The translations under genes were made by a program, and so were the position numbers. Under the pieces are notes generated by a model. The model was not told where the DNA came from and did no database searches. It saw only the letters and a program-made list of their open reading frames with translations. Below, one piece after another: positions 771 to 37,182 of a DNA stretch of 64,000 nt (position 1 is the stretch's first letter; each line of letters opens with the position of its first letter). Origin of the DNA: Neoechinorhynchus agilis (taxonomy: Eukaryota > Animalia > Acanthocephala); NCBI GenBank assembly GCA_051530055.1, contig CM121343.1:2264389-2328388 (forward strand). The letters run 5' to 3'.

Positions 771-867
771 GATTTACGATGACATTTCAAAGTTTTGATT
801 TCGCTTAATTGATTTGTTTTCCTGCGATTTCGAATACTGAACTGCATTTTTATCAAAATATTTCGAT

Positions 868-950: not shown

Positions 951-959
951 CATTCTACA

Positions 960-1793: not shown

Positions 1794-4007
1794 CTAGTTG
1801 ATCTTGTTGTAGTCTTCTAAACTCTTAACATTAAACAATCCAGGGTCAATCTTTGCAATTGTACTCAAAAGTAAATCCAGCGTCACGGATTTTTCAATAC
1901 TTTCCTTGATCGCAATTGCAGTTTGAAAAGAATTCGCGATGTCCTTATCCGTTCTAACCCGAACCATCTTCCATTCACCTCCGGCAACAACGCATTCAAT
2001 TATATTTTCATGGCAATGAAACAATTCATCCGTGAGTCGAATCCGAGCAAACGGCTCTTGGTAATTTCTAACATACAGCAGCCCACCAGATCCTATTTTT
2101 CGCTTTTCCATCACGTGTCGAGGAATAACCAATTTGAAATCTACCGAATTCAATGGTGGAGGTTTATATTTTAGCAGCTTGTCAAAGGTACCAAAAGTAT
2201 ACGGCATATCAACGGGTTGAAATATAAGACCGTCTGCTTGATGGGGGATTTCATTTCGGAACATCTCGTGCAAAATTTGTTTAGTGAACCGGAGGTTGTA
2301 AAAATCCTTCTTTTGAATCCGAAAAGGCTCTCGACTTCGGTCTATGGTTCCGTATTCGATAATAGCACGGTAACGAGGCTGCATAATCTCCCTCCAAATG
2401 AGTTCCGATCGTTTGTCATAATCCAGTTCCTTACCGGCAGGATGCCCGTCGAATGCCAAGACGTCAAATATAAGGAATCGAGGAATCCGTGTATCACCCA
2501 CGACATCTTCCACCATCTCTCCATCAAGCAAAGTCTGACGAAGATGATCTGTAGTGCCACGGTTCGTCACAAATGTAAGATTCTTTACTTTGAAGATTGA
2601 ATTGCGCCTGTCGATCATATAAATTTCGTTTTTCTCGCGAATGAAAAACAAGTACCGGGTTCCGCCGACCTTCCAACTTACTCGATAATTTAAGTGCCGC
2701 AATGTTTCAATATTTTTAACCGTCATTGATACTGGCTGACTACCGATGAATCCTTTGTCATGACTATCTGGACAAAGTTCTGCAATGTTTTGCTGAATTT
2801 CGTCGATTTTACTTTGATCGGTTTCGTATCTCAGTCGATAGATGTACGGAACATCTACCGAGAAGCCCTGTGACAGACCTGTTGGTTGGATTCCTTCGTT
2901 GAGTGAACCTTCAAGAATGGAAGAGTTTGTTTTTGTCGGTGGTTCAACGAGTTTCCTTTGTGATCTGAAAACTCCTTTCTCCGAGCTGACTGCAACTCTT
3001 TTGGCAGATGGACTCTGTTCCCGGCTTGCCGATTCCGTTATTTGTGCGATTTGAGACGATCTTTTACAAGAGGCTATATCATCCTTTAATCTCTTTCTCG
3101 ATTTGAGGTGCTTTGACTCGTTTTTAACTAATTGAGTAGTGAGTGAAGTATGTGATTCAGTTTGATTATCACCAGACGATTGTGAAACTCGTCTCTTTAG
3201 CGGTATCCTTTGCTCATCTGAATCACTTATACAACGCTTTCGTCCACCAGCGATCTTCTTTCTATCAATGTCAATGATATCAGTTGACAAGCTTTCGTCA
3301 TTTGCTTTCTGCCTCGATCCGTAATTTGTTCTCATTTCAGTACTAACTGCCCCTTTCGTGTTCTCGGTAATTGTCACATCTTTGACATTTATTTTGCGTT
3401 TCAATAACACTCCTGTTCGCCAACTTGAGTACCGCAATCTCAAGCCGTGAATAAACGGGGGAGCTTGAATTCCAGGGGCACGGCATCGCCGAAATTCCGC
3501 TATTGCACTTCTCAACTTCATTTTCATCTTTTCAATAAGATACGAAGCAACAAGAAATCCTGATTTATTGTATCCGCGTGTACAATGAACTGCGATGACT
3601 GAATTCGGGTTAGATTCTAGCAAGATATCGCAAATCTCAATGAATCGATTTTTGATTTCTTTTTTAGGGAAATCCTTATATCCACCGCAGGGCAGACAAA
3701 AGTGCGGCACATTTAAATACTCCGTAAACTCTTTATTGTCATAATATGGATCGTTATTTATAAGACTGATGATCCCGGCAATAGATCGATGTCCGGCAAT
3801 TTGGCGCATCCGATTAGCAGCAATGGTAGGCGTGAATCGCTTGTTTTCAGGAATGAGCGAATCGTATTTTGACGATAACGGAGTCTTAAATACGATAAAG
3901 CGGTCGCTAATGAGAGACGAACCCATCGACGTGGTATTTATCCACCGTTTAGGAATTCGCAGAATTGATGATGATGATGGATTGGTCGCTATTTGTTTCG
4001 TAGTCAT
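1794..4007 (-). CDS. RNGTT: mRNA capping enzyme paralog (cysteine RNA triphosphatase + guanylyltransferase), copy 1, intronless, 737 aa
   Basis: N-terminus IPKRW...RFIVFKTPL..KYD...RFTP and P-loop VHCTRGYNKSG; GTase motifs GF.GSQPVSM, YRVSWKVGGTRY, LLDGEMV, RFLIFDV, DGLIFQP, LKYKPPPLNSVDF, RVRTDK, in the order seen in metazoan RNGTT. Confidence 0.95.
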   Translation of the reverse strand: MTTKQIATNPSSSSILRIPKRWINTTSMGSSLISDRFIVFKTPLSSKYDSLIPENKRFTPTIAANRMRQIAGHRSIAGIISLINNDPYYDNKEFTEYLNVPHFCLPCGGYKDFPKKEIKNRFIEICDILLESNPNSVIAVHCTRGYNKSGFLVASYLIEKMKMKLRSAIAEFRRCRAPGIQAPPFIHGLRLRYSSWRTGVLLKRKINVKDVTITENTKGAVSTEMRTNYGSRQKANDESLSTDIIDIDRKKIAGGRKRCISDSDEQRIPLKRRVSQSSGDNQTESHTSLTTQLVKNESKHLKSRKRLKDDIASCKRSSQIAQITESASREQSPSAKRVAVSSEKGVFRSQRKLVEPPTKTNSSILEGSLNEGIQPTGLSQGFSVDVPYIYRLRYETDQSKIDEIQQNIAELCPDSHDKGFIGSQPVSMTVKNIETLRHLNYRVSWKVGGTRYLFFIREKNEIYMIDRRNSIFKVKNLTFVTNRGTTDHLRQTLLDGEMVEDVVGDTRIPRFLIFDVLAFDGHPAGKELDYDKRSELIWREIMQPRYRAIIEYGTIDRSREPFRIQKKDFYNLRFTKQILHEMFRNEIPHQADGLIFQPVDMPYTFGTFDKLLKYKPPPLNSVDFKLVIPRHVMEKRKIGSGGLLYVRNYQEPFARIRLTDELFHCHENIIECVVAGGEWKMVRVRTDKDIANSFQTAIAIKESIEKSVTLDLLLSTIAKIDPGLFNVKSLEDYNKIN

Positions 4008-5189
4008 CCTTAGTTATCGATAGTTATTGTACGTTATCTGTTATGATTCTAAGATCGATTCATTTTACCTAGTCGTTCTAATGATCGGTTTCTCCCAATT
4101 ACAAATAAGCAAACATGACGCAAATATTGGTTTTAAACATAAAAATATGTATAGAATATTGTTGATCATATCTTTAGCAATGTGTTACATGGGAGACTTT
4201 TATCATTACCAGCTTTTTGATTATTGACTTCGCAATTTTACATGCGGATTAAGCAGATTCTTGGCAATCAATTGGTATATTTCTTTATTATATTTATATA
4301 ATGAAAAATAACGCCACCAAAGTGTTAAGATCAAATGTATCGGTACCATAAATAATCGCCTCGATTAAGGCATATTTTTATAAACCTCTAGCAAAAGAAA
4401 TATTGTTCTCGCTGGATTTAAAGTGCTGATTTCACAGAAGGAAGAGTTCGGTCAATCTTTAAGTTTGATGTTTAGGTCTTCGCCCGGTAGAGAACCTTTT
4501 ATTAAAGACTTTTTGAACTTCGTCCGGTTCTTCATCATCGGAGGATAGTTTTTGCTATTGTTTAGTTATTGGCAGGAGGGAGAAGACGGTTGTGAATAAA
4601 CGAATGATTGACGGAGTTCAAAGTCTGAAGTGACCAGTCTGGGTATATTCGGAATGGTAATAAAAAGTATTATTATTATAATTGACAAGAAGCGTTTTTG
4701 AAGGAAGGAGAATGCAGTGTTTGGCATATGAAAAGTGATTTTGATTAGACAAGAACGGGAGCCGCTAGGGTTTTTGATAGGAGCCAGGGAAGGAAGGAGA
4801 GCAAGAATCCCGGAGAGAGTCATCGACAGACGATGTTAAGGTGATGAATGTACTGTTTCTGAAGGTCTGATTCGGATAAGGCGGTTATTTCGAACATTCC
4901 TAAGATGGCTGTTGACGAGCGAGCGATAGTTATTTTAGATTGCCCATACACTGCCAATTATAGATGCCCATAATTCGTTCAACTCCTCGAGTCCCTCGAG
5001 CTTTAGATAAGTGCAATTCTCGACTGTAAAACGAAACCAGTTTCGATGTAATATAAAAGATTCTGGCCTTCGTATTGTAAGACGGTAATCGGTTACAATA
5101 TTTGGTTAGAAACGAACTGAGGCGCTGGGAAGACACTCTCTTGTTATAAGAAAAGAAAACCGTGTGCAAGCATTGAAATGTTGATTATT

Positions 5190-5659
5190 TCAGAGCTGGT
5201 AATAACGCTGAATGAAGGGGTGGGGAAACCGCCATTGATTTAATTTTAAAATGTTCACACAAGAATCAAACATCAAAGTATACGGAGTCTTCGATAGCCT
5301 CAAACGTAGGTAGAGGAGCAATTTAATTTCGTGAGAGTTCGTACCGTTTATAATCGATCGGATATATTTCAACGGAAGCTTTTTTAAATCACCAAATTGA
5401 AAATCCATGATCCCGTTTCTCGTAATTGCGGGATGTATTTTGTCAAGTTCTATGGAATGTGAGAGACTTTTTCTTGGACAAAGGCGATTTCTGCATTTCT
5501 CAAAGCCGAACAATGCATACTAGAAACGTCGGCAATAATCGATGCTAAAATATCAATTCTGAATCCTTTCATCACAAACTTTTTACTGTTCCGCAATGGT
5601 TTCATGTACAAATTCTCCATTTCCCCTACATTTAAATTAAATATAAGGATGTTGTTCAT
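5190..5659 (-). pseudogene. Unknown frameshifted ORF (MNNILIFNLNVGEM...), part of the cassette; copies at 18239-18708 (-) and about 32990-33459 (+)
   Basis: Two overlapping ORFs (69 + 107 aa) joined by a one-base shift at caagaaaaagtc in all three copies; no recognisable domain. Confidence 0.4.
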
Positions 5660-6731
5660 GGATATATTTTGTTTGATGGTATAGAGATTTATTATTTCTC
5701 ATTTACAATATTTCGTCCGCCCCATCGGACTTTTTAAGATCTAAAAAATATGTCAAGGTGACTTTATTCACAGTTTAAACCCATTAATCCATCTATTTTG
5801 AGTGTCTAATTTCACTCGAGTTCAACACAATTGTCATTGCGAAATATATTATTAAGGCAATTTCGATCTCAACAGAGAATCTGATTGCAATTAAGTCAAA
5901 GATCTAATTACTTGATTTATAATTCAACAACGTCAATCGGCAATATAGCCGGATGCCTTTTTCAGTGAGGCTTTAAGCAGTTGAATTTTTGTTCAACTGA
6001 TAAATGCCAACTTTTGAATTGGTAAATGAAATTCTCGTTGCTAAGAGACGACATTAGAGCTTGGTTTTAAGTATCGACGAAAAAAAAGGAAAATGCCCAC
6101 TATTAAAAAACTCACTTCAATATCGATTATTCCTGCTCTACTGATCGTCACTTTGTTTTTATCAACTATCTTCGTGTATTTAGTATCAAATTTAAGCAAG
6201 AACGTTTCTCCGAGTTCAAGCCTTTTCAAATAGACGATTTACTGAAAACAATAATAAATTTTGTGTTGTTCTAAAGAGGGCATTTCCGAATACTTGAGAT
6301 GCTGAGCAACGCTGATCAATGCTGCCGTCTTATCTTAAAATTTGCTGCTTCAGTCAATTACTCAAAAGCTTACATATCAAATATTTTGTCCATATGTTTC
6401 ACTCGCTTGTTTTTAATCGAAGTTGCAACATTCTTTTCAATATATTCATATTTTACACTCAGTTGTTTAAAAAAATATTTATCCAAAGCGAGAGATCGAG
6501 TGCAATACCTCTTCAATGAACTCACTTTCGTTCTTGAATCGAAAAAAATGTTTAACTAAAAATTCACGGGCTTTTTAGAATACACACGATTTGAATTCAA
6601 GGCGATGAGCACAAAATTCGACAAATTTTTCGCTTATCTTTTATTAAGATACTCGGGTACCGTAGAAATAATTTCAAATAACAAAGAATAATCGTCTTCC
6701 TAAAGTAGTTTTACTTTTAATTCCGGTTTTT

Positions 6732-6953
6732 TTAAATTGATGTATTGCATCCAACGGTGATTGGATGCATTTTCGAATAGTAGTTATAAATGTAAGTGGT
6801 GAAGCATCCTGCCCTTAAAACTTCGGCATTAAGCGATGCTAAAATATCAATTCTGAATCCTTGCATCACAAACTTTTTACTGTTCTGCAATGGCTTCATG
6901 TACAAATTCTCCATTTCCCCTACATTTAAATTAAATGTAAAGATGTTGTTCAT
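6732..6953 (-). pseudogene. Partial paralog of the MNNI ORF, abutting the 3' end of CRE A (equivalent at about 19790-20030)
   Basis: MNNIFTFNLNVGEMENLYMKPLQNSKKFVMQGFRIDILAS vs MNNILIF...; its upstream flank reappears at about 9075-9195 on the far side of the CRE element. Confidence 0.6.
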
Positions 6954-6961
6954 TGACTGAA

Positions 6962-8999
6962 TTTATTTTTTTTTGAAAATATACTCACAGCAAATCAAGT
7001 CTAATGTATCTATTAGCCACCCAGATCCATCTCTTCACCACTCGGAACCGTCGCAAGGACAGTTGCAGCGTTGCCGCACTGGATCGCGAGACCTATGCTT
7101 TGCAGGAAGAACGTTCCTGCTCTTGGGTCTCCGGTTGCGATCCTCATCTTCCTTGAAAGATCCGCCGTAAAGTCTTGGCCTCAGCACCGAGCACAGACGA
7201 GACCGTGTCTACCCAAAGTATCCACAAGGACCTCGGAACGGTGTTCAGCCAGACACCGGATTCCTTCGAGGAGACCGCCAACAATCGAGCTTGGGTCACC
7301 TCATCACGCGCGTCAGAAAGCATTGAGTTGTGAACTCGCGTGATTAAAGGTTTATCCCAAACTGACTGTCTCTTGCCTCTCAAAGTAACTTCATCGCACT
7401 GCGTAATGCGGCAAAATTCGAAGACCGCCTCTTTAAAATTTTCATCAAGTAAAAACTCTTTTTCGAGCAATTTAGCTACCAACTTTTGGCTGCGCTCATA
7501 GGAACCTAAAAAGGCCGGAATCGCAACATCGGCTGTTTTACGGATACCCAAACCGCCGGAAGATACAGGCAAGGAAGCTTGTCTCCAACTTCGGAAGGAA
7601 CAGGGCACTCTTTATTAAAAATAATGCCTGATGGGTTGGAAGTTCCTTCGTACGCTCGCAGAGCAATTCGACTCTCGACGCTATTTTGAGGATCTCCCGA
7701 GGTATATTTCCATTAAAAACCCAGCTACCCAGAAGAGATAGTTGAGCACGCGAAATTATTTTGATGTTAAGTGCTTGCTGCGTAAAGCTGTTGAGGATCT
7801 CAGTTTGACTAGCGGCGTTTTCTGCATTCATTACAAACAGCTCGCATTTCGAGGTATTAAGCTCAACGCCGAGCTTAGCAGCTTCCCTCATGACGACCTC
7901 CAAATCTCGCAACACCACGGAGGGAGACCCAACGAGTGTTGCATCGTCCAAATACCAAGCATTAAACTTGGATTGGAGCGAATGAGCTATCGGGTTGACG
8001 GCAAGAGAGAAACCGATAGGACCGAGAGGATCACCTTGTTGGACACCTCGTTGAGACCAGATGATACGGTCGTTGAAAACAAGAGGAGTCTCAGTCCCAT
8101 CAGCGTTGAGGAAATACTGGTATGCTTCCGGTGCGTAAGTTGCGACAGCTTCCAGGAGCACACTGCGATCAACACAGTTGAAGGCGTTTCGGAAGTCGCA
8201 CTTGAGCACAACACAGGACTATGAACTGTTTGTGACAAAGGAGCGAAGTGCGTGCACGACAGCTTCGGCTCCGCAAGGCGTACAGCAACCGAGTTGTACC
8301 GGGCGGAAAAGTTCGCCAAGATTCACTTCAAGACGTTTGCAAAGAATCTTTGCTGCAAGACGCCGAAGTGTCGATCCCATAGCGATGGGACGAATCCCAC
8401 CGTCTTTCTTTTTAAGGGCACAGAGTGAAGCGCCGAAGAACAATTGAATTGCGACGGGAGGCAATTCGTCACCAAGGAACAGATCAACGAGGCGTGAAAA
8501 TCTATTCGAAAGGCTCTGAGCGGCTTCACCCACGGAGAAGGACAACATGTCCTTGAGGTGTTGAGGCCTAAGCCCGTCTATCCCATGACCGGATCCACTA
8601 GCAAAGGAGGATATCGCCGTTTTTTAAGCAATCCCTAAGCACCGCATTCCGAACAAAAACCTTTCGGAGAAGAGGTGGCCTGGAGGTTTGATAACTCGGC
8701 CTGTTGTTGTAAAGCCGTTGCGTCATCATCATTGAACTCGACGTCGTCCGGTTGTCGTGTGATGGATACAGAGTAATCCAACTCAATTGATGACGTCACA
8801 GTCGGCACGGCAGAATCCGAGAAGTCAACGTTCGGCTGCATTGTTTAAAGAAAAACCTCAAAAAAGACCGACCGAGACAACACAACGAATTCTCAGCTAG
8901 CTTATCGGTCGGTAAGCAACGAGCGCCGTCAAGAACTGCTAAGACAGTTTGCGCAGGAAATTACGATATATAGAACGCAAAAGCTCAGCCTTTTTGAAG
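6962..8999 (-). mobile_element. CRE-clade (RLE-type) non-LTR retrotransposon A, with several internal deletions, RT core retained
   Basis: IRPIAMG..LRRL, LKCDFRNAFN, QQGDPLGP, WYLDD, WRQASLPVSSGGLG, GRHGLVC, LAIQCGNAATV. Confidence 0.85.
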
Positions 9000-10690: not shown

Positions 10691-12849
10691 AACGCAAACC
10701 TGTCTTTCTTGACTTATATTCCACGAAATTATCAATGATTTGCCTATAAATGCGGTTGACGTATAAAACGAGAAAATTGATTTCCGACGACCAGTCCTTC
10801 GTTTGATGCATAAACTCAGGGATCCTCCGAAATAAAACATCAAGAATCTCACAAGTTCCTTCTGAATCTAACGCTTTTCGCAAATCACCATTGAAAATCT
10901 CTATGTAAAACGGCATTAGGCTTCCAAATAGACAAAAGATCTTTTATCATGTCCTATTTTTGATTTTATAGCCTCTGTCGCCATCGAGCGATACCGAGCG
11001 ATCACTATCTTAAGATTGATTTGTATTTGATCACAGATTTCTTGTTCCGAATCCCCCAACAATGAGTTCATTCCATAAATTCGTCCATGCATTCTGCTTT
11101 TGCTCTTCCATCGACATTTCTGAAACCGAGTGAATTAAAGGTGCACTGCTATTTATAGATTGGATAACGACACGTCCTGTGCTCCACCGGCACCGCAAAT
11201 CCACCTCGCATGTTATTAACTATTCCGAATAGTGACGTGACCGTCAGATAATCAGTTGAAATTTTTTTGCAGGTACGTTCTTAGGTCACACAAACCGTCA
11301 CGTAGAATTATGAAACTTCGTATTTGAACACGCAATAATCAGAAATAAAGATATTTATTACGTGTCAACTATCATTCATAAAAGTGTTACATCGACTGGG
11401 AGACGGAGATATTGAACGATTCATCTCTCCGATCCAAAGGATTCGAATAAATCACTGCCTAATCGGGAATGTGGGGTATCGTGGCTTCTGAGCTGGGTAA
11501 TATAATGAGCAAATTTGTGGTTTTAGACATTTGACTCTTATGGCTGGCGGTTCATGCAATAATACTGATGATAGTTTTCAGCTTATTTGTCCCTTGATTA
11601 TTTTTATTTTAACAGGACAGTAGGTATTTTTTGCCTAAATTTCATCTGCCACATATAACACGAGCAGTTCTTGTCGAAGGTCAAACGCGTTATTGACAAC
11701 ATCGAAAGTTACCGATAGTAGTCATTTGCACAAAGATTTTACTACCTATTTAAACGGCGAGTAATGGTTTAATACTTAATAAAACAAGATTATGAAAAAT
11801 CTTTTTGTCAGGTCTGATCAGGTTGGAGAATCATCAAACACTTATTCGATTACATTAATTATTCATTTTTATCTAACACTTTAGAAAATTTAAATATCCA
11901 AGCGCTCAAAACATATTTATCCTTCATTACCTCGAGGATGTATCCAGCTTTCCCTTTCTGATTCGCTGATTCTCTGATAAACCCATTTTCCAATCTAAGT
12001 TAAAAATTGTGGAGAGAAGTTGGAAAATGTAGAACGACGGATCGAGGCATTTGTATTTCTCCCTTTTTCGCTACTTGACCAGCACCCGAAACTGCATTTT
12101 CATCCACACAAAAGATTGCAAATTCTCAGAGACGTTAATTATTGTGCGAATCTGTTGAAAATAAAATAAATTAACTTTTCACTTGTGACATTAAGCAATT
12201 CTGGAGAGTTGAGGTAGAATATTGTATATTTGAGCGTTCGTATGAATGCTCTTGGTTTCCTGTATTAAATAAATTGAAATTCCCGGGATAAAACGTGTAA
12301 TCTTGTAGAGATCTGTCGCCCCACCACATTTCCACTGAACAATTCTAAAACTCCCCATCATCACTTGGGTTTTGTCGAGCTGAACTTCCTAGGAATGAGA
12401 TTGGCCGAACCATTATCAATAAGGAATATCTGCTGCTCTATAATCCGACTGACAAATTCGGAATTGCTCTCTTCAGCATCCATACATATATCGTCCAATT
12501 CCTCCATGAAGTTTCCGTGAAAGTGATTTATATTTGAAATCTCTGCAGCTTTAGTGTTGGGTTCTTCGGAATTAGATGTCTTAAGGGCTGATGAACTTGG
12601 TTCGTTGACGACTGAGGAGATCAAATCGGGCAGGTAAGCCAAGTTTTCAATGAGAGCACAAATCTTCGTCGCAAAAACCATAATAGCTTCTAAAACGGGC
12701 CTTCATTAAAGACAGAAGTTTCTCGCACGTTTCCTCCAATCTCCGTTCCAGCAAATCCATAGTGACCAACTGAAAAGTAGGCAGCTGATGACGATGTTGT
12801 GAAGGCAGGGGGCCAAAGCTCAATATTTTCTAAACTCTGTACAATCTTA

Positions 12850-13719: not shown

Positions 13720-14842
13720 CATGCAGTAGTGGCACTTTTGAAATCCCAGTTCGCGGTCGATGCGAAGTGTATATAACGCCTATAAGCGATCGAAACACGT
13801 TTATATTTCCTAAAAGTCGATCGATTTACGATGACATTTCAAAGTTTTGATTTCGCTTAATTGATTTGTTTTCCTGCGATTTCGAATACTGAACTGCATT
13901 TTTATCAAAATATTTCGATGCAATGCATCTAGCGTGATAGCGACAGCCGAGAAAAGAGAGAAGCTAAGATTTTGTGGACGGTGGTGATTATATCAGAAAT
14001 TGCATTCTACATTTAAAGAAATTTGGATTAAACAATGAAGCATCCACTTTTTCTATATAAAAAGACGCACTCGAGTCTTCGAAATGGTAGATAAAGAAAT
14101 TCGAAGAGAGAAATAAAAACTTAAAAATGTCGACGTGGCGCGAACGGCGTTTAAAGTTTTTTAATGTCGTTTTTTCGTTTAAACACGTTTTTCACTCTCC
14201 GCATCGTCTGCGAACTTTGATTCGCAATTTCGAAACAGTTGTCGATTTGCTCTTCTGCGTGATTTCAAAAGAGCTCGAGCATTTCGGCTTATTAAGTTGA
14301 GAATATAAATTTGTGAAAGTAATCACCGGTTAAGACGACTGTTTTTGGTTCTGAAAAAGTGTCAATAATTGATTGGAATTCCCAATTGAAGTTTTGTAAA
14401 AATGACGTGATTTTTTTCGAATTCTTAAGAATCGTTAATATTTCTGATCCCAAGTTTTGATTTTTCAATTTCATTTTTTATGAAGTTTTCGATTTTTATA
14501 AAATATAAGATGAATTTGTGTGATTATCACTATAAAAAGAAACTTTAACACCCAAACAGAATTGAAGTTTACTAATCGATGCTTTATTGAAACAATTTAA
14601 TAAGATCGAAGATGTGTAAGCGCCGGCAGTTAACAAATTAATTTTTAATCGAACAGTTCGCTCCATCCGCGATTTCAAACTTAGCATCCCTGAAGGAAAT
14701 CTCAATTCCATTGTTGGAACCATAGAATACGCGAGTATTGATTCATGGCGTTTGTTGATCGTCTCATTGTTAATCCATATCTCTTTAAATTAAATTTGAC
14801 AGAAAAATAGATCCCGCATTCTTTGAAGTGTCTTGCAACTTT

Positions 14843-17056
14843 CTAGTTGATCTTGTTGTAGTCTTCTAAACTCTTAACATTAAACAATCCAGGGTCAATC
14901 TTTGCAATTGTACTCAAAAGTAAATCCGGCGTCACGGATTTTTCAATGCTTTCCTTGATCGCAATTGCAGTTTGAAAAGAATTCGCGATGTCCTTATCCG
15001 TTCTAACCCGAACCATCTTCCATTCACCTCCGGCAACAACGCATTCAATTATATTTTCATGGCAATGAAACAATTCATCCGTGAGTCGAATCCGAGCAAA
15101 CGGCTCTTGGTAATTTCTAACATACAGCAGCCCACCAGATCCTATTTTTCGCTTTTCCATCACGTGTCTAGGAATAACCAATTTGAAATCGACCGAATTC
15201 AATAGTGGAGGTTTATATTTTAGCAGCTTGTCAAAGGTACCAAAAGTATACGGCATATCAACGGGTTGAAATATAAGACCGTCTGCTTGATGGGGGATTT
15301 CATTTCGGAACATCTCGTGCAAAATTTGTTTAGTGAACCGGAGGTCGTAAAAATCCTTCTTTTGAATCCGAAAAGGCTCTCGACTTCGGTCTATGGTTCC
15401 GTATTCGATAATAGCACGGTAACGAGGCTGCATAATCTCCCTCCAAATGAGTTCCGATCGTTTGTCATAATCCAGTTCCTTACCGGCAGGATGCCCGTTG
15501 AATGCCAAGACGTCAAATATAAGGAATCGAGGAATCCGTGTATCACCCACGACATCTTCCACCATCTCTCCATCAAGCAAAGTCTGACGAAGATGATCTG
15601 TGGTGCCACGGTTCGTCACAAATGTAAGATTGTTTACTTTGAAGATTGAATTGCGCCTGTCAATCATATAAATTTCGTTTTTCTCGCGAATGAAAAACAA
15701 GTACCGGGTTCCGCCGGCTTTCCAGCTTACTCGATAATTTAAGTGCCGCAATGTTTCAATATTTTTAACCGTCATTGATACTGGCTGACTACCGATGAAT
15801 CCTTTGTCATGACTATCTGGACAAAGTTCTGCAATGTTTTGCTGAATTTCGTCGATTTTTGTTTGATCGGTTTCGTATCTCAGTCGATAGATGTCCGGAA
15901 CATCTACCGAGAAGCCCTGTGACAGACCTGTTGGTTGGATTCCTTCGTTGAGTGAACCTTCAAGAATGGAAGAGTTTGTTTTTGTCGGTGGTTCAACGAG
16001 TTTCCTTTGTGATCTGAAAACTCCTTTCTCCGGGCTGACTGCAACTCTTTTTGCAGATGGACTCTGTTCCCGGCTTGCCGATTCCGTTATTTCTGCGGTT
16101 TGAGACGATCTTTTACAAGAGGCTATATCATCCTTTAATCTCTTTCTCGAGTTGAGGTGCTTTGACTCGTTTTTAACTAATTGAGTAGTGAGTGAAGTAT
16201 GTGATTCAGTTTGATTATCACCAGACGATTGTGAAACTCGTCTCTTTAGCGGTATCCTTTGCTCATCTGAATCACTTATACAACGCTTTCGTCCACCAGC
16301 GATCTTCTTTCTATCAATGTCAATGATATCAGTTGACAAGCTTTCGTCATTTGCTTTCTGCCTCGATCCGTAATTTGTTCTCATTTCAGTACTAACTGCC
16401 CCTTTCGTGTTCTCGGTAATTGTCACATCTTTGACATTTATTTTGCGTTTCAATAACATTCCTGTTCGCCAACTTGAGTACCGCAATCTCAAGCCGTGAA
16501 TAAACGGGGGAGCTTGAATTCCAGGGGCACGGCATCGCCGAAATTCCGCTATTGCACTTCTCAACTTCATTTTCATCTTTTCAATAAGATACGAAGCAAC
16601 AAGAAATCCTGATTTATTGTATCCGCGTGTACAATGAACTGCGATGACTGAATTCGGGTTAGATTCTAGCAAGATATCGCAAATCTCAATGAATCGATTT
16701 TTGATTTCTTTTTTAGGGAAATCCTTATATCCATCGCAGGCCAGACAAAAGTGCGGCACATTTAAATGATCCGTAAACTCTTTATTGTCATAATATGGGT
16801 CGTTATTTATAAGACTGATGATCCCGGCAATAGATCGATGTCCGGCAATTTGGCGCATCCGATTAGCAGCAATGGTAGGCGTGAATCGCTTGTTTTCAGG
16901 AATGAGCGAATCGTATTTTGACGATAACGGAGTCTTAAATACGATAAAGCGGTCGCTAATGAGAGACGAACCCATCGACGTGGTATTTATCCACCGTTTA
17001 GGAATTCGCAGAATTGATGATGATGATGGATTGGTCGCTATTTGTTTCGTAGTCAT
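14843..17056 (-). CDS. RNGTT: mRNA capping enzyme paralog, copy 2, intronless, 737 aa
   Basis: Same motifs; 17 amino-acid differences from copy 1 by direct comparison of the translations. Confidence 0.95.
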   Translation of the reverse strand: MTTKQIATNPSSSSILRIPKRWINTTSMGSSLISDRFIVFKTPLSSKYDSLIPENKRFTPTIAANRMRQIAGHRSIAGIISLINNDPYYDNKEFTDHLNVPHFCLACDGYKDFPKKEIKNRFIEICDILLESNPNSVIAVHCTRGYNKSGFLVASYLIEKMKMKLRSAIAEFRRCRAPGIQAPPFIHGLRLRYSSWRTGMLLKRKINVKDVTITENTKGAVSTEMRTNYGSRQKANDESLSTDIIDIDRKKIAGGRKRCISDSDEQRIPLKRRVSQSSGDNQTESHTSLTTQLVKNESKHLNSRKRLKDDIASCKRSSQTAEITESASREQSPSAKRVAVSPEKGVFRSQRKLVEPPTKTNSSILEGSLNEGIQPTGLSQGFSVDVPDIYRLRYETDQTKIDEIQQNIAELCPDSHDKGFIGSQPVSMTVKNIETLRHLNYRVSWKAGGTRYLFFIREKNEIYMIDRRNSIFKVNNLTFVTNRGTTDHLRQTLLDGEMVEDVVGDTRIPRFLIFDVLAFNGHPAGKELDYDKRSELIWREIMQPRYRAIIEYGTIDRSREPFRIQKKDFYDLRFTKQILHEMFRNEIPHQADGLIFQPVDMPYTFGTFDKLLKYKPPLLNSVDFKLVIPRHVMEKRKIGSGGLLYVRNYQEPFARIRLTDELFHCHENIIECVVAGGEWKMVRVRTDKDIANSFQTAIAIKESIEKSVTPDLLLSTIAKIDPGLFNVKSLEDYNKIN

Positions 17057-20029
17057 CCTTAGTTATCGATAGTTATTGTACGTTATCTGTTATGATTCTA
17101 AGATCGATTCATTTTACCTAGTCGTTCTAATGATCGGTTTCTCCCAATTACAAATAAGCAAACATGACGCAAATATTGGTTTTAAACATAAAAATATGTA
17201 TAGAATATTGTTGATCATATCTTTAGCAATGTGTTACATGGGAGACTTTTATCATTACCAGCTTTTTGATTATTGACTTCGCAATTTTACATGCGGATTA
17301 AGCAGATTCTTGGCAATCAATTGGTATATTTCTTTATTATATTTATATAATGAAAAATAACGCCACCAAAGTGTTAAGATCAAATGTATCGGTACCATAA
17401 ATAATCGCCTCGATTAAGGCATATTTTTATAAACCTCTAGCAAAAGAAATATTGTTCTCGCTGGATTTAAAGTGCTGATTTCACAGAAGGAAGAGTTCGG
17501 TCAATCTTTAAGTTTGATGTTTAGGTCTTCGCCCGGTAGAGAACCTTTTATTAAAGACTTTTTGAACTTCGTCCGGTTCTTCATCATCGGAGGATAGTTT
17601 TTGCTATTGTTTAGTTATTGGCAGGAGGGAGAAGACGGTTGTGAATAAACGAATGATTGACGGAGTTCAAAGTCTGAAGTGACCAGTCTGGGTATATTCG
17701 GAATGGTAATAAAAAGTGTTATTATTATAATTGACAAGAAGCGTTTTTGAAGGAAGGAGAATGCAGTGTTTGGCATATGAAAAGTGATTTTGATTAGACA
17801 AGAACGGGAGCCGCTAGGGTTTTTGATAGGAGCCAGGGAAGGAAGGAGAGCAAGAATCCCGGAGAGAGTCATCGACAGACGATGTTAAGGTGATGAATGT
17901 ACTGTTTCTGAAGGTCTGATTCGGATAAGGCGGTTATTTCGAACATTCCTAAGATGGCTGTTGACGAGCGAGCGATAGTTATTTTAGATTGACCCTACAC
18001 TGCCAATTATAGATGCCCATAATTCGTTCAACTCCTCGAGTCCCTCGAGCTTTAGATAAGTGCAATTCTCGACTGTAAAACGAAACCAGTTTCGATGTAA
18101 TATAAAAGATTCTGGCCTTCGTATTGTAAGACGGTAATCGGTTACAATATTTGGTTAGAAACGAACTGAGGCGCTGGGAAGACACTCTCTTGTTATAAGA
18201 AAAGAAAACCGTGTGCAAGCATTGAAATGTTGATTATTTCAGAGCTGGTAATAACGCTGAATGAAGGGGTGGGGAAACCGCCATTGATTTAATTTTAAAA
18301 TGTTCACACAAGAATCAAACATCAAAGTATACGGAGTCTTCGATAGCCTCAAACGTAGGTAGAGGAGCAATTTAATTTCGTGAGAGTTCGTACCGTTTAT
18401 AATCGATCGGATATATTTCAACGGAAGCTTTTTTAAATCACCAAATTGAAAATCCATGATCCCGTTTCTCGTAATTGCGGGATGTATTTTGTCAAGTTCT
18501 ATGGAATGTGAGAGACTTTTTCTTGGACAAAGGCGATTTCTGCATTTCTCAAAGCCGAACAATGCATACTAGAAACGTCGGCAATAATCGATGCTAAAAT
18601 ATCAATTCTGAATCCTTTCATCACAAACTTTTTACTGTTCCGCAATGGTTTCATGTACAAATTCTCCATTTCCCCTACATTTAAATTAAATATAAGGATG
18701 TTGTTCATGGATATATTTTGTTTGATGGTATAGAGATTTATTATTTCTCATTTACAATATTTCGTCCGCCCCATCGGACTTTTTAAGATCTAAAAAATAT
18801 GTCAAGGTGACTTTATTCACAGTTTAAACCCATTAATCCATCTATTTTGAGTGTCTAATTTCACTCGAGTTCAACACAATTGTCATTGCGAAATATATTA
18901 TTAAGGCAATTTCGATCTCAACAGAGAATCTGATTGCAATTAAGTCAAAGATCTAATTACTTGATTTATAATTCAACAACGTCAATCGGCAATATAGCCG
19001 GATGCCTTTTTCAGTGAGGCTTTAAGCAGTTGAATTTTTGTTCAACTGATAAATGCCAACTTTTGAATTGGTAAATGAAATTCTCGTTGCTAAGAGACGA
19101 CATTAGAGCTTGGTTTTAAGTATCGACGAAAAAAAAAGGAAAATGTCCACTATTAAAAAACTCACTTCAATATCGATTATTCCTGCTCTACTGATCGTCA
19201 CTTTGTTTTTATCAACTATCTTCGTGTATTTAGTATCAAATTTAAGCAAGAACGTTTCTCCGAGTTCAAGCCTTTTCAAATAGACGATTTACTGAAAACA
19301 ATAATAAATTTTGTGTTGTTCTAAAAGGGCATTTCCGAATACTTGAGATGCTGAGCAACGCTGATCAATGCTGCCGTCTTATCTTAAAATTTGCTGCTTC
19401 AGTCAATTACTCAAAAGCTTACATATCAAATATTTTGTCCATATGTTTCACTCGCTTGTTTTTAATCGAAGTTGCAACATTCTTTTCAATATATTCATAT
19501 TTTACACTCAGTTGTTTAAAAAAATATTTATCCAAAGCGAGAGATCGAGTTCAATACCTCTTCAATGAACTCACTTTCGTTCTTGAATCGAAAAAAATGT
19601 TTAACTAAAAATTCACGGGCTTTTTAGAATACACACGATTTGAATTCAAGGGATGAACACAAAATTCGATAAATTTTTCGCTTTTATTAAGATACTCGGG
19701 TATCGTAGAAATAATTTCAAATAACAAAGAATAATCGTCTTCCTAAAGTAGTTTTACTTTTAATTCCGGTTTTTTTAAATTGATGCATTGCATCCGACGG
19801 TGATTGGATGCATTTTCGAATAGTAGTTATAAATGTACTTGAGGGATTTTATAAAAGATTTAAGTGGTGAAGCATCCTGCCCTTAAAACTTCGGCATTAA
19901 GCGATGCTAAAATATCAATTCTGAATCCTTGCATCACAAACTTTTTACTGTTCTGCAATGGTTTCATGTACAAATTCTCCATTTCCCCTACATTTAAATT
20001 AAATGTAAAGATGTTGTTATTTGACTGAA

Positions 20030-21741
20030 TTTATTTTTTTTTGAAAATATACTCACAGCAAATCAAGTCTAATGTATCTATGAGCCTCCCAGATCCATCT
20101 CTTCACCACTCGGAACCGTCGCAAGGACAGTTGCAGCGTTGCCGCACTGGATCGCGAGACCCATGCTTTGCAGGAAGAACGTTCCTGCTCTTGGGTATCC
20201 GGTTGCGATCCTCGTCTTCCTTGAAAGATCCGCCGTAAAGTTATTGGCCTCAGCACCGAAGGCACCGAGCGTCTCAACGCCGAAAGGCACGAAGTGGTGT
20301 GCCCTTAAGAGCTCGGCGTACTTCCCCAGCTTGCGTTCCTCCGCGGCGATTGCAGCGCCTCCTTCGCATCGCGAGGAATATCTTAGATTGGACAGGAAAA
20401 GGATGACCTTACGAGTGGCGTCCCAGACACGAGAACACAGTTACCCCGTCCGGTCTTCGACCATAGAATCTGGAGAGGTGACTCTGTTCGAGCAGATTCG
20501 GTGCGTGTATCCAATTCAAGACCCGACTAATCACCGAGCTAATTTCGGCGTGGCGAGCATACCTGCCACCGGGCTGACGACAGACGAGACCGTTTCTACC
20601 CACCAACGAACAGATCAACGAGGCGTGACAATCTATTCGAAAGGCTCTGAGCGGCTTCACCCACGGAGAAGGACAACATGTCCTTGAGGTGTTGAGGCCT
20701 AAGCTCGTCTATCCCATGACCGGATCCACTAGCAAAGGAGGATATCGCTGAATTGAGTTCCTTTACGGAGCAGGGAGACTTCGAGGCAGCCGCGAGGAAA
20801 GTCGGGATTTTCGGTGGTTCCGATGGAGGATGTTTTTAGTTCAGGGTTTCGAGAGTTTCCTTGTTAGCCTGGGCAAATACTTCAGAGGAGAAAAGGATGC
20901 GAACAGCTCCTCGGATGTCACCATCCGCAATTTTGGAGGAGGCACGTTCCCCTATGGATCTAGCCGAAAAATTACTGTGTGTAGATTGTTCTGTAGGTCC
21001 GCGATCGGCAGCTCGAATTGCGTCCGAAAAGAGTTGATCGAAGGAGGCGATTCTTTCTTTGATTGAACTAACCAACGACCCCTCCGAACGGTCACCAGCG
21101 CGAATAACCAGCCTGGGAAAAGCGAAGAGACGTGTCCATGCAATGGAAGAGCCGTTTTCTAAGCAATCCCTAAGCAAAGCACTAAATGACTTCGTCATCT
21201 TATACCGAGCGCCCTTTGGGATCCGTTTCAGGACGTTCCTGGGCAGAACGCGCAAGATATCAGGTAATTTCGTGGGAATGACCTGAGGCGCTGGGACATT
21301 CAGAGGAGGTAGTGGGTTCGGGATGACAGATCTTGGGGGCGGGAGGAACAAGAACAGCGGGATCTGAAGGGACCGTGTATCCGAACTAACAAGGATTTGT
21401 TAAGGCAAAAACAACCACCGCATTCCGAACAAAAACCTTTCGGAGAAGAGGTGGCCTGTAGGTTTGATAACTCGGCCTGTTGTTGTAAAGCCGTTGCGTC
21501 ATCATCATCATTGAACTCGACGTCGTCCGGTGATGACGTCACAGTCGGCACGGCAGAATCCGAGAGGTCAACGTTCGGCTGCATTGTGTAAAGAAAGACC
21601 TCAAAAAAGACCGACCGAGACAACACAACGAATTCTCAGCTAGCTTATCGGTCGGTAAGCAAAGAGCGCCGTCAAGAACTGTTAAGACAGTTTGCGCAGG
21701 AAATTACGATATATAGAACGCAAAAGCTCAGCCTTTTTGAA
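20030..21741 (-). mobile_element. CRE-type retrotransposon B, paralogous insertion to A, RT core deleted, zinc finger and REL region retained
   Basis: CSECGGCFCLNKSLLVRIHGPFRSRC zinc finger, LKRIPKGAR, RHAEISSVISR, RPDGVTVF, PFGVETLGAFG. Confidence 0.85.
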
Positions 21742-25965: not shown

Positions 25966-25979
25966 GTGATGACGACACA

Positions 25980-31310: not shown

Positions 31311-31329
31311 ATTTTGGAGTGGATTACGA

Positions 31330-32656: not shown

Positions 32657-35600
32657 GAACAAAAATTCAACTGCTTAAAGCCTCACTGAAAAAGGCATCC
32701 GGCTATATTGCCGATCGACGTTGTTGAATTATAAATCAAGGAATTAGATCATTGACTTAATTGCAATCAGATTCTCTGTTGAGATCGAAATTGCCTTAAT
32801 AATATAATTCGCAATGACAATTGTGTTGAACTCGAGTGAAATTAGACACTCAAAATAGATGGATTAATGGGTTTAAACTCAGAATAAAGTCACCCTGACA
32901 TATTTTTTAGATCTTAAAAAGTCCGACGAGACGGACGAAATATTGTAAATGGGAAATAATAAATCTCTATACCATCAAACAAAATATATCCATGAACAAC
33001 ACCTTATATTTAATTTAAATGTAGGGGAAATGGAGAATTTGTACATGAAACCATTGCGGAACAGTACAAAGTTTGTGATGAAGGGATTCAGAATTAATAT
33101 TTTAGCATCGCTTGTTGCCGACGTTTCTAGTATGCATTGTTAGGCTTTGAGAAATGCAGAAATCGCCTTTGTCCAAGAAAAGTCTCTCACATTCCATAGA
33201 GCTTGACAAAATACATCCCGCAATTACGAGAAATGGGATCATGGATTTTCCCTTTGGTGATTTAAAAAAGCTTCCGTTGAAATATATCCGATCGATTATA
33301 AACGGTACGAACTCTCACGAAATTAAATTGCTCCTCTGCCTACGTTTGAGGCTATCGAAGACTCCGTATACTTTGATGTTTGATTCTTGTGTGAACATTT
33401 TAAAATTAAATCAATGGCGGTTTCCCCACCCCTTCATTCAGCGTTATTACCAGCTCTGAAATAATCAACATTTCAATGCTTGTACACGGTTTTCTTTTCT
33501 TATAACAAGAGAGTGTCTTCCCAGCGCCTCAGTTCGTTTCTAACCAAATATTGTAACCGATTACCGTCTTACAATACGAAGGCCAGAATCTTTTATATTA
33601 CATCGAAACTGGTTTCGTTTTACAGTCGAGAATTGCACTTATCTAAAGCTCGAGGGACTCGAGGAGTTGAACGAATTATGGGCATCTATAATTGGCAGTG
33701 TAGGGTCAATCTAAAATAACTATGACTCGCTCGTCAACAGCCATCTTAGGAATGTTCGAAATAACCGCCTTATCCGAATCAGACCTTCAGAAACACTACA
33801 TTCATCACCTTAACATCGTCTGTCGATGACTCTCTCCAGGATCCTTCGCTCTCCTTCCTTGCCTGTCTCCTAACAAAAACTCTAACAGCTCCCGTTCTTG
33901 TCTAATCAAAATCACTTTTCATATGCCAAACAATGCATTCTCCTTCCTTCAAAAACGCTTCTTGTCAATTATAATAATAACACTTTTTATTACCATTCCG
34001 AATCTACCCAGACTGGTCACTTCGGACTTTGAACTCCGTCAATCATTCATTTATTCACAACCGTCTTCTCCCTCCTGCCAATAACTAAACAATAGCAAAA
34101 ACTATCCTCCGATGATGAAGAACCGGACGAAGTTCAAAAAGTCTTTAATAAAAGGTTCTCTACCGGGCGAAGACCTAAACATCAAACTTAAAGATTGACC
34201 GAACTCTTCCTTCTGTGAAATCAGCACTCGAGGCGATTACTTATGGTACCGAAACATTTGGTCTTAACACTTTGGTGGCGTTATTTTTCATTATATAAAT
34301 ATAATAAATAAATATACCAATTGATTGCCAAGAATCTGCTTAATCCGCATGTAAAATGGCGAAGTCAATAATCAAATAGCTGGCAATGATAAAAGTCTCC
34401 CATGTAACACATTGCTAAAGATCCGATCAACAATATTCTATACATATTTTTATGTTTAAAACCAATATTTGCGTCATGTTTGCTTATTTGTAATTGGGAG
34501 AAACCGATCATTAGAACGACTAGGTAAAACGAATCGATCTTAGAATCATAACAGATAACGTACAATAACTATCGATAACTAAGGATGACTACGAAACAAA
34601 TAGCGACCAATCCATCATCATCATCATCAATTCTGCGAATTCCTAAACGGTGGATAAATACCACGTCGATGGGTTCGTCTCTCATTAGCGACCGCTTTAT
34701 CGTATTTAAGACTCCGTTATCGTCAAAATACGATTCGCTCATTCCTGAAAACAAGCGATTCACGCCTACCATTGCTGCTAATCGGATGCGCCAAATTGCC
34801 GGACATCGATCTATTGCCGGGATCATCAGTCTTATAAATAACGATCCATATTATGACAATAAAGAGTTTACGGAGTATTTAAATGTGCCGCACTTTTGTC
34901 TGCCCTGCGGTGGATATAAGGATTTCCCTAAAAAAGAAATCAAAAATCGATTCATTGAGATTTGCGATATCTTGCTAGAATCTAACCCGAATTCAGTCAT
35001 CGCAGTTCATTGTACACGCGGATACAATAAATCAGGATTTCTTGTTGCTTCGTATCTTATTGAAAAGATGAAAATGAAGTTGAGAAGTGCAATAGCGGAA
35101 TTTCGGCGATGCCGTGCCCCTGGAATTCAAGCTCCCCCGTTTATTCACGGCTTGAGATTGCGGTACTCAAGTTGGCGAACAGGAGTGTTATTGAAACGCA
35201 AAATAAATGTCAAAGATGTGACAATTACCGAGAACACGAAAGGGGCAGTTAGTACTGAAATGAGAACAAATTACGGATCGAGGCAGAAAGCAAATGACGA
35301 AAGCTTGTCAACTGATATCATTGACATTGATAGAAAGAAGATCGCTGGTGGACGAAAGCGTTGTATAAGTGATTCAGATGAGCAAAGGATACCGCTAAAG
35401 AGACGAGTTTCACAATCGTCTGGTGATAATCAAACTGAATCACATACTTCACTCACTACTCAATTAGTTAAAAACGAGTCAAAGCACCTCAAATCGAGAA
35501 AGAGATTAAAGGATGATATAGCCTCTTGTAAAAGATCGTCTCAAATCGCACAAATAACGGAATCGGCAAGCCGGGAACAGAGTCCATCTGCCAAAAGAGT

Positions 35601-37182
35601 TGCAGTCAGCTCGGAGAAAGGAGTTTTCAGATCACAAAGGAAACTCGTTGAACCACCGACAAAAACAAACTCTTCCATTCTTGAAGGTTCACTCAACGAA
35701 GGAATCCAACCAACAGGTCTGTCACAGGGCTTCTCGGTAGATGTTCCGTACATCTATCGACTGAGATACGAAACCGATCAAAGTAAAATCGACGAAATTC
35801 AGCAAAACATTGCAGAACTTTGTCCAGATAGTCATGACAAAGGATTCATCGGTAGTCAGCCAGTATCAATGACGGTTAAAAATATTGAAACATTGCGGCA
35901 CTTAAATTATCGAGTAAGTTGGAAGGCCGGCGGAACCCGGTACTTGTTTTTCATTCGCGAGAAAAACGAAATTTATATGATCGACAGGCGCAATTCAATC
36001 TTCAAAGTAAAGAATCTTACATTTGTGACGAACCGTGGCACTACAGATCATCTTCGTCAGACTTTGCTTGATGGAGAGATGGTGGAAGATGTCGTGGGTG
36101 ATACACGGATTCCTCGATTCCTTATATTTGACGTCTTGGCATTCGACGGGCATCCTGCCGGTAAGGAACTGGATTATGACAAACGATCGGAACTCATTTG
36201 GAGGGAGATTATGCAGCCTCGTTACCGTGCTATTATCGAATACGGAACCATAGACCGAAGTCGAGAGCCTTTTCGGATTCAAAAGAAGGATTTTTACGAC
36301 CTCCGGTTCACTAAACAAATTTTGCACGAGATGTTCCGAAATGAAATCCCCCATCAAGCAGACGGTCTTATATTTCAACCCGTTGATATGCCGTATACTT
36401 TTGGTACCTTTGACAAGCTGCTAAAATATAAACCTCCACCATTGAATTCGGTAGATTTCAAATTGGTTATTCCTCGACACGTGATGGAAAAGCGAAAAAT
36501 AGGATCTGGTGGGCTGCTGTATGTTAGAAATTACCAAGAGCCGTTTGCTCGGATTCGACTCACGGATGAATTGTTTCATTGCCATGAAAATATAATTGAA
36601 TGCGTTGTTGCCGGAGGTGAATGGAAGATGGTTCGGGTTAGAACGGATAAGGACATCGCAAATTCTTTTCAAACTGCAATTGCGATCAAGGAAAGTATTG
36701 AAAAATCCGTGACGCTGGATTTACTTTTGAGTACAATTGCAAAGATTGACCCTGGTTTGTTTAATGTTAAGAGTTTAGAAGACTACAACAAGATCAACTA
36801 GAAAGTTGCAAGACACTTCAAAGAATGCTGGATCTATTTTTCTGTCAAAATTAATTTAAAAAGATATGGATTAACAATGAGACGATCAACAAATGCCATG
36901 AATCAATCCTCGCGTATTCTTTGGTTCCAACAATGGAATTGAGATTTCCTTCAGGGATGCTAAGTTTGAAATCGCGGATAGAGCGAACTGTTCGATTAAA
37001 AAATAATTGTTAACTGCCGGCGCTTACACGTCTTCGATCTTATTAAATTGTTTCAATAAAGCATCGATTAGTAAACTTCAATTCTGTTTGGGTGTTAAAG
37101 TTTCTTTTTATAATGATAATCACACAAATTCATCTTATATTTTATAAAAATCGAAAACTTCATAAAAAATGAAATTGAAAAA
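32657..37182 (+). repeat. Inverted partial copy of the cassette (equivalent to about 1410-5994), lacking the CRE element
   Basis: Reverse complement of unit 1 from gaacaaaaattcaactgc to gaaattgaaaaat; about 60 bp deleted near 34228. Confidence 0.9.
34585..36801 (+). CDS. RNGTT: mRNA capping enzyme paralog, copy 3 (inverted), intronless, 738 aa
   Basis: Same motifs; differs from copy 1 by one extra Ser in the TCA microsatellite plus V>A (KAGG) and N>D. Confidence 0.95.
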   Translation: MTTKQIATNPSSSSSILRIPKRWINTTSMGSSLISDRFIVFKTPLSSKYDSLIPENKRFTPTIAANRMRQIAGHRSIAGIISLINNDPYYDNKEFTEYLNVPHFCLPCGGYKDFPKKEIKNRFIEICDILLESNPNSVIAVHCTRGYNKSGFLVASYLIEKMKMKLRSAIAEFRRCRAPGIQAPPFIHGLRLRYSSWRTGVLLKRKINVKDVTITENTKGAVSTEMRTNYGSRQKANDESLSTDIIDIDRKKIAGGRKRCISDSDEQRIPLKRRVSQSSGDNQTESHTSLTTQLVKNESKHLKSRKRLKDDIASCKRSSQIAQITESASREQSPSAKRVAVSSEKGVFRSQRKLVEPPTKTNSSILEGSLNEGIQPTGLSQGFSVDVPYIYRLRYETDQSKIDEIQQNIAELCPDSHDKGFIGSQPVSMTVKNIETLRHLNYRVSWKAGGTRYLFFIREKNEIYMIDRRNSIFKVKNLTFVTNRGTTDHLRQTLLDGEMVEDVVGDTRIPRFLIFDVLAFDGHPAGKELDYDKRSELIWREIMQPRYRAIIEYGTIDRSREPFRIQKKDFYDLRFTKQILHEMFRNEIPHQADGLIFQPVDMPYTFGTFDKLLKYKPPPLNSVDFKLVIPRHVMEKRKIGSGGLLYVRNYQEPFARIRLTDELFHCHENIIECVVAGGEWKMVRVRTDKDIANSFQTAIAIKESIEKSVTLDLLLSTIAKIDPGLFNVKSLEDYNKIN

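Follow-up and report, generated by a model that had tools for sequence, protein, structure and literature searches.

An amplified family of RNGTT-like genes in Neoechinorhynchus agilis with an altered phosphatase half and a conserved guanylyltransferase half

What is encoded by three nearly identical RNGTT-like open reading frames (ORFs) that lie within a few tens of kilobases of one another in the genome of Neoechinorhynchus agilis, a fish-parasitic thorny-headed worm (Acanthocephala), and in which the phosphatase signature of the capping enzyme is altered in every copy? RNGTT is essential and normally single-copy in animals, and its two activities, RNA 5′-triphosphatase (TPase) and guanylyltransferase (GTase), are thought to be tightly coupled on RNA polymerase II (Pol II). 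The stretch of DNA analysed here, referred to as the window, comprises 64,000 nucleotides at ~2.26 Mb on chromosome CM121343.1 (GCA_051530055.1). Judging from sequence comparisons, we lean on balance towards reading the window ORFs as a paralog in which a pseudo-phosphatase is joined to a competent GTase, which would make the protein a GTase-only capping enzyme.

The three ORFs, which constitute subfamily A, are uninterrupted and intronless and encode proteins of 737, 737 and 738 amino acids (copy 1, 1794..4007, minus strand; copy 2, 14843..17056, minus strand; copy 3, 34585..36801, plus strand) that are 98–99.6% identical to one another. An earlier note on this DNA had described them as intact and RNGTT-like, and Pfam recognises three domains in the window protein, DSPc (E 1.4e-9), mRNA_cap_enzyme (PF01331; 4.6e-53) and mRNA_cap_C (PF03919; 1.9e-12). 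The best match among solved structures was human RNGTT (E 2e-110, ~35% identity overall), with the alignment splitting into a TPase part (residues 17-194, aligned to 1I9S and 2C46) and a GTase part (residues 395-717, aligned to 3S24 and 3RTX). The match to 1I9S (E 3.6e-31) places a cysteine-phosphatase fold of the dual-specificity type at the N-terminus. In copy 1 the TPase-like domain is encoded at 3423-3959 and the GTase together with the oligonucleotide-binding (OB) fold at 1797-2852; between them, at 2853..3422 (all on the minus strand), lies a linker of 190 amino acids that is rich in Ser, Lys and Arg and predicted to be disordered. An AlphaFold model, for which 40 homologs were supplied, shows the same division, the predicted local distance difference test score being ~90 for residues 20-195 and 385-737 and <40 for residues 196-378 (183 residues). 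The linker is ~150 amino acids longer than that of the canonical N. agilis enzyme, P0005, and its basic clusters (RKK..RKR, KRR, RKR) resemble nuclear localisation signals, which suggests that the predicted protein is nuclear. Compared on its own with the protein atlas, the linker returned just weak capping-enzyme matches (0.66) and no foreign domain.

The window copies are not the housekeeping enzyme of the worm, as the earlier note had argued. A search for a canonical RNGTT identified P0005 (597 amino acids; L001:10001-11794), which is located at 4.38 Mb on the same chromosome, ~2.1 Mb from the window, has Piezo, TCP1 and EST1 as gene neighbours, and carries the motifs HCTHGYNRSG (CX5R), KADG (KxDG) and LKWKP. 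The possibility that a window copy is the housekeeping ortholog was rejected because it is P0005 that has intact catalytic motifs and, at 0.33 versus 0.62-0.73 for the window-type paralogs, the shortest branch. The claim of an amplified family was likewise borne out, N. agilis holding subfamilies A and B, pseudogenes, fragments and single-domain paralogs. Subfamily A is made up of the three window copies. Subfamily B encodes proteins of 750 amino acids that are 71% identical to those of A and read HCTRGYNQSG (CX5Q), KDDG and LKYKP; its four copies are ~98% alike and are found on scaffold JBMGUZ010000012 (L002), chromosome CM121341 (L008), chromosome CM121342 (L009, in which the start codon is lost and 17 amino acids are deleted) and scaffold JBMGUZ010000018 (L010).

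The P-loop of all three window copies reads HCTRGYNKSG (copy 1, 3558..3587, minus strand; copy 2, 16607-16636, minus strand; copy 3, 35008-35037, plus strand). In copy 1 the nucleophile Cys142 is kept, the His at position C+2 is Arg144 and the Arg at C+6 is Lys148, the codon of which lies at 3564-3566, as had been read before. Conservation was assessed in an alignment of 180 full-length RNGTTs chosen for the presence of the P-loop Arg, in which 76 columns are at least 95% conserved (mouse numbering is used from here on unless a copy is named). P0005 is changed at 4 of the 74 conserved columns that it covers, and subfamilies A and B at 12–13 of the 76. The phosphatase changes in A and B are H128R, R132K (A) or R132Q (B), Y165Q, K166A and Y169F/V; each of these sites is at least 98% conserved among the 180 RNGTTs (the His at C+2 occurs in 179 of them), and P0005 keeps all five near-invariant residues. 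Loss of the P-loop Arg is rare elsewhere, just four of the ~250 homologs collected lacking it apart from the N. agilis family; it is absent from proteins of Ditylenchus dipsaci (A0A915DGR4, Leu), Hirondellea gigas (A0A6A7G1Z7, Leu) and Aquilegia (A0A2G5DS30, Asn). At the Arg site P0005 has the codon CGA, subfamily B has CAA, A has AAA and the pseudogene L003 has GAA; the simplest path between these would be a change from Arg to Gln followed by one to Lys or Glu. Because this site has accepted positive, neutral and negative side chains, it would no longer serve as a phosphate clamp. These features fit a predicted pseudo-phosphatase: the protein tyrosine phosphatase (PTP) fold is kept, the catalytic Arg is replaced, the domain is under purifying selection (see below), and loss of activity is predicted from the sequence. 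Thus, with the fold and the Cys retained but the P-loop Arg and four further near-invariant residues gone, the domain most likely does not hydrolyse the γ-phosphate of 5′-triphosphate RNA.

In contrast to the phosphatase, the GTase half retains its essential residues. Motif I reads KVGG in copy 1 (2661..2672, minus strand) and KAGG in copy 2 (15710-15721, minus strand) and copy 3 (35923-35934, plus strand), so that the nucleophile Lys446 is kept and the Asp is replaced by Gly448; motif V reads LLKYKP in all three copies, with LKYKP in place of LKWKP, and motifs III, IIIa, IV and VI are present. On each of these points the earlier reading was correct. The residues kept are K294, G297, R299, R315, D343, E345, D363, R380, D438, G439, K458, K460, R530, D532, K533 and N537, and the family-specific changes are W459Y, A295V or A295D (the x of motif I, a 95% Ala column) and the conservative Y362F in motif IIIa, which also occurs in 14 of the 180 reference RNGTTs. 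The motif I change, D296G, is limited to the three window copies, subfamily B reading KDDG. Neither guanylylation nor in vivo capping is reported to need this Asp (PMC1807946), and the human GTase domain, when isolated, can cap diphosphate RNA unaided (PMC5640233). The description of both catalytic signatures as altered therefore holds for the phosphatase and overstates the case for the GTase, since the Asp-to-Gly change is specific to subfamily A, the Asp is reported to be dispensable and the other essential residues are intact. With its Lys nucleophile and all known essential residues in place, the GTase and OB fold would most likely form the enzyme–GMP adduct and cap diphosphate-ended RNA.

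Estimates by the Nei-Gojobori method for subfamily A versus B gave 0.58 synonymous (dS) and 0.16 nonsynonymous (dN) substitutions per site for the whole protein, a dN/dS of 0.28 (binomial p 5e-25); the ratio was 0.245 in the TPase domain (p 1.4e-8), 0.38 in the linker (p 3e-5) and 0.24 in the GTase (p 9e-14). When neutral change was simulated at 0.29 change per site, ~18 stop codons arose in the ORF and the probability of having no stop was ~0; even at 5% change, 0.7% of copies stayed open. Taken together, the divergence between A and B and the simulated stops indicate that selection has preserved the family over most of its existence, the altered phosphatase domain included. Because the phosphatase half is itself under purifying selection, it is probably a non-catalytic module, which could for example dock on Pol II/SPT5 and regulate the GTase.

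Transcripts of the locus were sought in four N. agilis runs that were labelled as RNA by guess, probably correspond to the single-worm libraries of PMC12690905, and contained 42-55% of the words sampled from the duplication unit (described below). Contigs of these four probable RNA runs, which are unstranded and were placed at an identity of at least 95%, cover 1200..5505 (the minus strand being assumed from the gene) and agree with the locus at 99-100%, over motif I as well as over the K148 codon, which they show unchanged. Coverage ends near 5505 in all four runs and 5531-6900 is essentially bare, and this shared stop beside a bare stretch argues against DNA contamination. The contigs carry both the GTC variant of motif I (copy 1) and the GCC variant (copies 2 and 3), showing that more than one copy is transcribed. 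Also covered is ~1.5 kb upstream of the copy 1 ATG (4007-5505), which would be either a very long 5′ untranslated region or an independent transcript, and some contigs leave the copy 1 locus at 4680 and 4422. The earlier note had been prepared to give up its reading if these were the only capping genes of the genome and fully active, or if the family were silent with a dN/dS near 1; what was found is a separate canonical gene, contigs that cover the locus, and a ratio of 0.28 between A and B.

Several observations weigh against the interpretation of the window ORFs as functional GTase-only enzymes. The signal of selection within the subfamilies is weak, with 11 synonymous to 18 nonsynonymous changes in A and 13 to 34 in B (pooled 24:52, p 0.04), which fits redundancy of near-identical copies accompanied by many dead relatives, and pseudogenes, truncated copies and fragments are common in the family. 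Expression is low and was read from unstranded assembled contigs of runs guessed to be RNA. The motif I Asp-to-Gly change is near-absent elsewhere in the RNGTTs examined, where just Asp to Asn was seen (in Adineta and an iridovirus), and it may carry a cost that published assays miss. At the site CDS2, which contacts the C-terminal domain (CTD) of Pol II, R411 is Gln in subfamily A. Finally, to judge by the residues involved, subfamily A might retain some phosphatase activity through the combination of its Lys at C+6 and the new Arg at C+2.

The first of these points bear on an alternative that we regard as unlikely, though the strongest of those considered: that the copies are redundant duplicates in birth-and-death decay, with no distinct role, and that their motif changes are early damage. 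Dead relatives are what this alternative predicts, and they exist. Pseudogene L003, at 1.63 Mb on the chromosome of the window, is a frameshifted copy with HCTRGYNESG as its P-loop and no catalytic Lys (WEADG); L004 is a B copy truncated at its 5′ end; L009 lacks its start codon and 17 amino acids; and three short fragment proteins are annotated (P0032, P0035 and P0066). The within-subfamily dN/dS of 0.3-0.8, which is drawn from few changes, and the low RNA depth point the same way. However, at a dS of 0.58 subfamilies A and B both retain ORFs of >2.2 kb, with the low ratios given above for the whole protein and for the altered domain, a state that the simulation practically never reached at this divergence; seven full or near-full copies are still open; and the changes have selectively hit the TPase active site and left the GTase essentials untouched, which is not the pattern of random damage. 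If the copies were nevertheless merely decaying, the family would be of value only as an example of how birth-and-death evolution and gene conversion proceed in an acanthocephalan genome.

The loss of the P-loop Arg also bears on the proposal, made in the earlier note, that the altered phosphatase traps 5′-triphosphate RNA, either viral or made by an RNA-dependent RNA polymerase, and is fused to a GTase of altered specificity. In its favour, the domain keeps both its Cys nucleophile and its fold and is under constraint, and a putative RNA-virus-derived insertion, as yet unchecked, lies near a B copy. Yet the residue that has been lost is the one that binds phosphate, its site tolerates Lys, Gln and Glu, and K166, a further basic and near-invariant residue, has been replaced by Ala. 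The known STYX-type pseudophosphatases that bind phospho-ligands show the opposite arrangement, keeping the Arg and losing the Cys. As for the GTase, none of its specificity residues is changed. We consider this proposal improbable in both its parts, and none of the results favours a link to viral RNA or to products of an RNA-dependent RNA polymerase.

A protein with both halves weakened might instead act as a competitive regulator that docks on Pol II/SPT5 and damps or times canonical capping. Most CTD-site residues are indeed kept (R411Q and L381S are the sole changes in subfamily A), and the motif I Asp-to-Gly change in subfamily A could be taken as a sign of a weakened GTase. Against this, the GTase catalytic residues are fully conserved over a dS of 0.58, which would be unexpected if catalysis were dispensable, and subfamily B has kept KDDG, making this explanation very improbable in our view.

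To the question of origin, the trees give a consistent answer. All N. agilis paralogs fall into a single clade (100/100) in a tree of 22 capping enzymes, where the sister group is Pomphorhynchus laevis together with a relative (95/94); within the N. agilis clade P0005 branches first, followed by P0006 and then by B together with A. P0006 is a stand-alone GTase paralog (421 amino acids, KADG; L005:10001-11266, at ~5.27 Mb on CM121341.1). Its counterpart P0059 is a stand-alone TPase paralog (376 amino acids; L011:6001-7131, at ~10.16 Mb on CM121342.1) that reads HCTLGFNRSG, with the Arg kept, and VISL, and has a long basic tail; no GTase is found within 6 kb of it. In a tree of the TPase domain P0059 is sister to A and B (97/96), with P0005 outside. 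P0059 and P0006 look like the products of a natural fission of a second RNGTT copy. The nearest relative outside N. agilis is at most 41% identical (exhaustive profile search of 1.84 billion representative proteins). The single N. agilis clade points to a radiation of a host gene within this lineage. A viral origin was rejected, as an iridovirus capping enzyme included in the tree of 22 falls elsewhere in it and is unrelated; identity with PIR-1/DUSP11 was rejected as well, since a GTase is fused, the Arg is lost, and PIR1 structures match far less well (E 2.4e-15) than the Mce1 TPase (3.6e-31). So far the paralog family has been found only in Neoechinorhynchus, and no description of such a paralog was found in the literature.

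Two features that had been taken as marks of the window copies proved to be shared with the canonical gene. P0005 is encoded by a single 1794-nt exon and also reads IISL, so neither the absence of introns nor IISL, although the latter is present in all three copies, distinguishes them; with VISL in P0059, IISL is best viewed as a trait of the lineage. The P. laevis ortholog, in which 607 amino acids are spread over 39.5 kb (L007:3001-42486), is by this measure intron-rich. The loss of introns relative to P. laevis thus predates the family, and an intronless, perhaps retroposed, replacement of the original gene may have been the ancestor of the entire N. agilis clade. The window copies themselves were rejected as processed retrogenes: the canonical gene has no introns either, and the units that contain the copies show neither poly(A) nor target-site duplications at their ends and hold >1.5 kb of upstream sequence.

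How the three copies came to lie together can be read from these units. Unit 1 (695..7190, minus strand) is 98.3% identical to 13748-20259, and the counterpart of its core (1375-5994) is 37218-32657. Units 1 and 2 (the latter at 13748..20259, minus strand) are tandem direct repeats 13 kb apart; unit 3 (32657..37218, plus strand) is inverted, is 97-98% identical to the core of unit 1, and lacks 58 bp found in unit 1 at 4364-4421. Identity is distributed unevenly. Units 1 and 2 are identical over ~2.1 kb from upstream into the start of the gene and show 1-2% differences over the rest of the coding sequence, whereas units 1 and 3 differ by 4 substitutions and one codon indel in the coding sequence and by 2-5% in both flanks. 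Such a mosaic is the pattern left by segmental duplication followed by gene conversion. An AATAAA is found ~255 nt past the stop codon, and the unit extends beyond it.

The least probable explanation is that the genes are cargo of a mobile element or of an endogenised virus that captured a host capping gene: B copies at ~98% identity do lie on two other chromosomes and two scaffolds, and fragments of one abundant reverse transcriptase (RT) family do adjoin many copies, but these fragments vary in orientation and distance and have no fixed arrangement, the segments shared by B copies have nested, non-coincident ends (flanks compared at seven loci), the ends of the window units showed neither terminal repeats nor target-site duplications nor poly(A), and these units contain no other long ORF, so that transposable-element and viral cargo were rejected.

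The RT family, for which RVT_1 is the only Pfam match, is represented in the window by an intact ORF of 1019 amino acids (38830-41889, plus strand) and by fragments at 7541-8218 and 20839-21399 (minus strand) and at 12803-13381, 48723-49982 and 50216-51046 (plus strand); it also adjoins the capping-gene copies at L008 and L010. At L008, a called gene (L008:4419-4894) that lies ~5 kb upstream of the B copy has a Pfam match to RdRP_1 and is a putative RNA-virus polymerase fragment. An ORF of 992 amino acids (L002:4469-7444, plus strand), with relatives in L004 and L010, is found near B copies on unplaced, satellite-rich scaffolds and not near the chromosomal B copies; it has no Pfam match, and its atlas scores are at most 0.74. 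Elsewhere, the window contains a pol fragment of the Ty3/gypsy type with RNase H, an integrase zinc-binding domain and an integrase core (26018-27736, plus strand), a 78-bp repeat in 4 copies of 99% identity (25290-25601), a 192-bp satellite in 9.3 copies of 90% identity (52211-53993), and two paralogous ORFs on the plus strand that have no Pfam match (54153-55010, 285 amino acids; 55906-56682, 258 amino acids). The region at 54-58 kb has a strong negative GC skew (-0.38).

On the interpretation that we lean towards, that of a pseudo-phosphatase fused to a competent GTase, the family would have originated when the worm's own capping gene, already intronless, was duplicated, after which local segmental duplication would have multiplied the copies and gene conversion homogenised them. 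The diphosphate-ended substrate of the protein would be supplied in trans, with P0005, the stand-alone TPase P0059 or, as in recapping, a kinase as its source. One can go further and imagine a division of labour among a canonical fused enzyme, the TPase P0059, the GTase P0006 and a multi-copy pseudo-phosphatase/active-GTase protein, the last serving as a second enzyme dedicated to capping or recapping a special class of RNA (decapped mRNAs, diphosphate ends or a particular set of Pol II genes), with the dead phosphatase reused for docking or regulation; as a complete scheme this is speculative and rather doubtful. The family is of interest as a natural case in which the phosphatase half is predicted to be disabled, the GTase half is conserved, the whole protein is selected and split paralogs exist alongside. 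It offers a genetic dissection of the non-catalytic roles of the TPase domain, such as docking and allostery, and it bears both on whether non-mammalian animals have dedicated enzymes of the recapping type and on the fate of an essential gene once it has become intronless and prone to duplication.

Among known systems the closest is RNGTT itself (Mce1, HCE; PDB 8P4B, 1I9S, 3S24), with which the window paralog shares the order of cysteine-phosphatase, linker, nucleotidyltransferase and OB fold, all GTase motifs and a position nested in the animal RNGTT tree; it differs in five TPase replacements, the motif I Gly, the motif V Tyr, the longer linker and its presence in multiple copies beside a canonical gene. 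Use of a GTase without triphosphatase chemistry, on ends that have been made diphosphate by another activity, has precedents in recapping, to which the proposed activity would be analogous. In mammalian cytoplasmic recapping the capping enzyme is found with a 5′-monophosphate kinase on Nck1 (PMC4138027), and trypanosome TbCe1 is a kinase-GTase that constitutes a dedicated second capping paralog (PMC11417388). Unlike these, the N. agilis protein has a linker with clusters resembling nuclear localisation signals, lacks the proline-rich C-terminal Nck1 site of the mammalian enzyme, and has no kinase domain or known partner.

The phosphatase half on its own recalls the PTP pseudophosphatases (STYX, MK-STYX, RPTP D2; PMC8269279), in which a PTP fold is likewise under selection with its catalytic motif altered, although the N. 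agilis domain keeps the Cys and loses the Arg, belongs to the RNA 5′-phosphatase branch and is fused to an apparently active enzyme of another class. The proteins of Ditylenchus, Hirondellea and Aquilegia, for which no characterisation was found in the literature, resemble it in that a recognisable capping homolog has lost the Arg at C+6, but they are unrelated, sporadic and single, sit on long branches, and are not known to be amplified, under selection or expressed. Finally, the separate TPase (P0059) and GTase (P0006), each sister to the family in the domain trees, bring to mind the split capping apparatus of fungi (PMC4066402); whereas the fungal TPases are metal-dependent tunnel enzymes, the pieces in the worm would derive from fission of a fused gene of metazoan type, and the canonical fused gene has been kept beside them.

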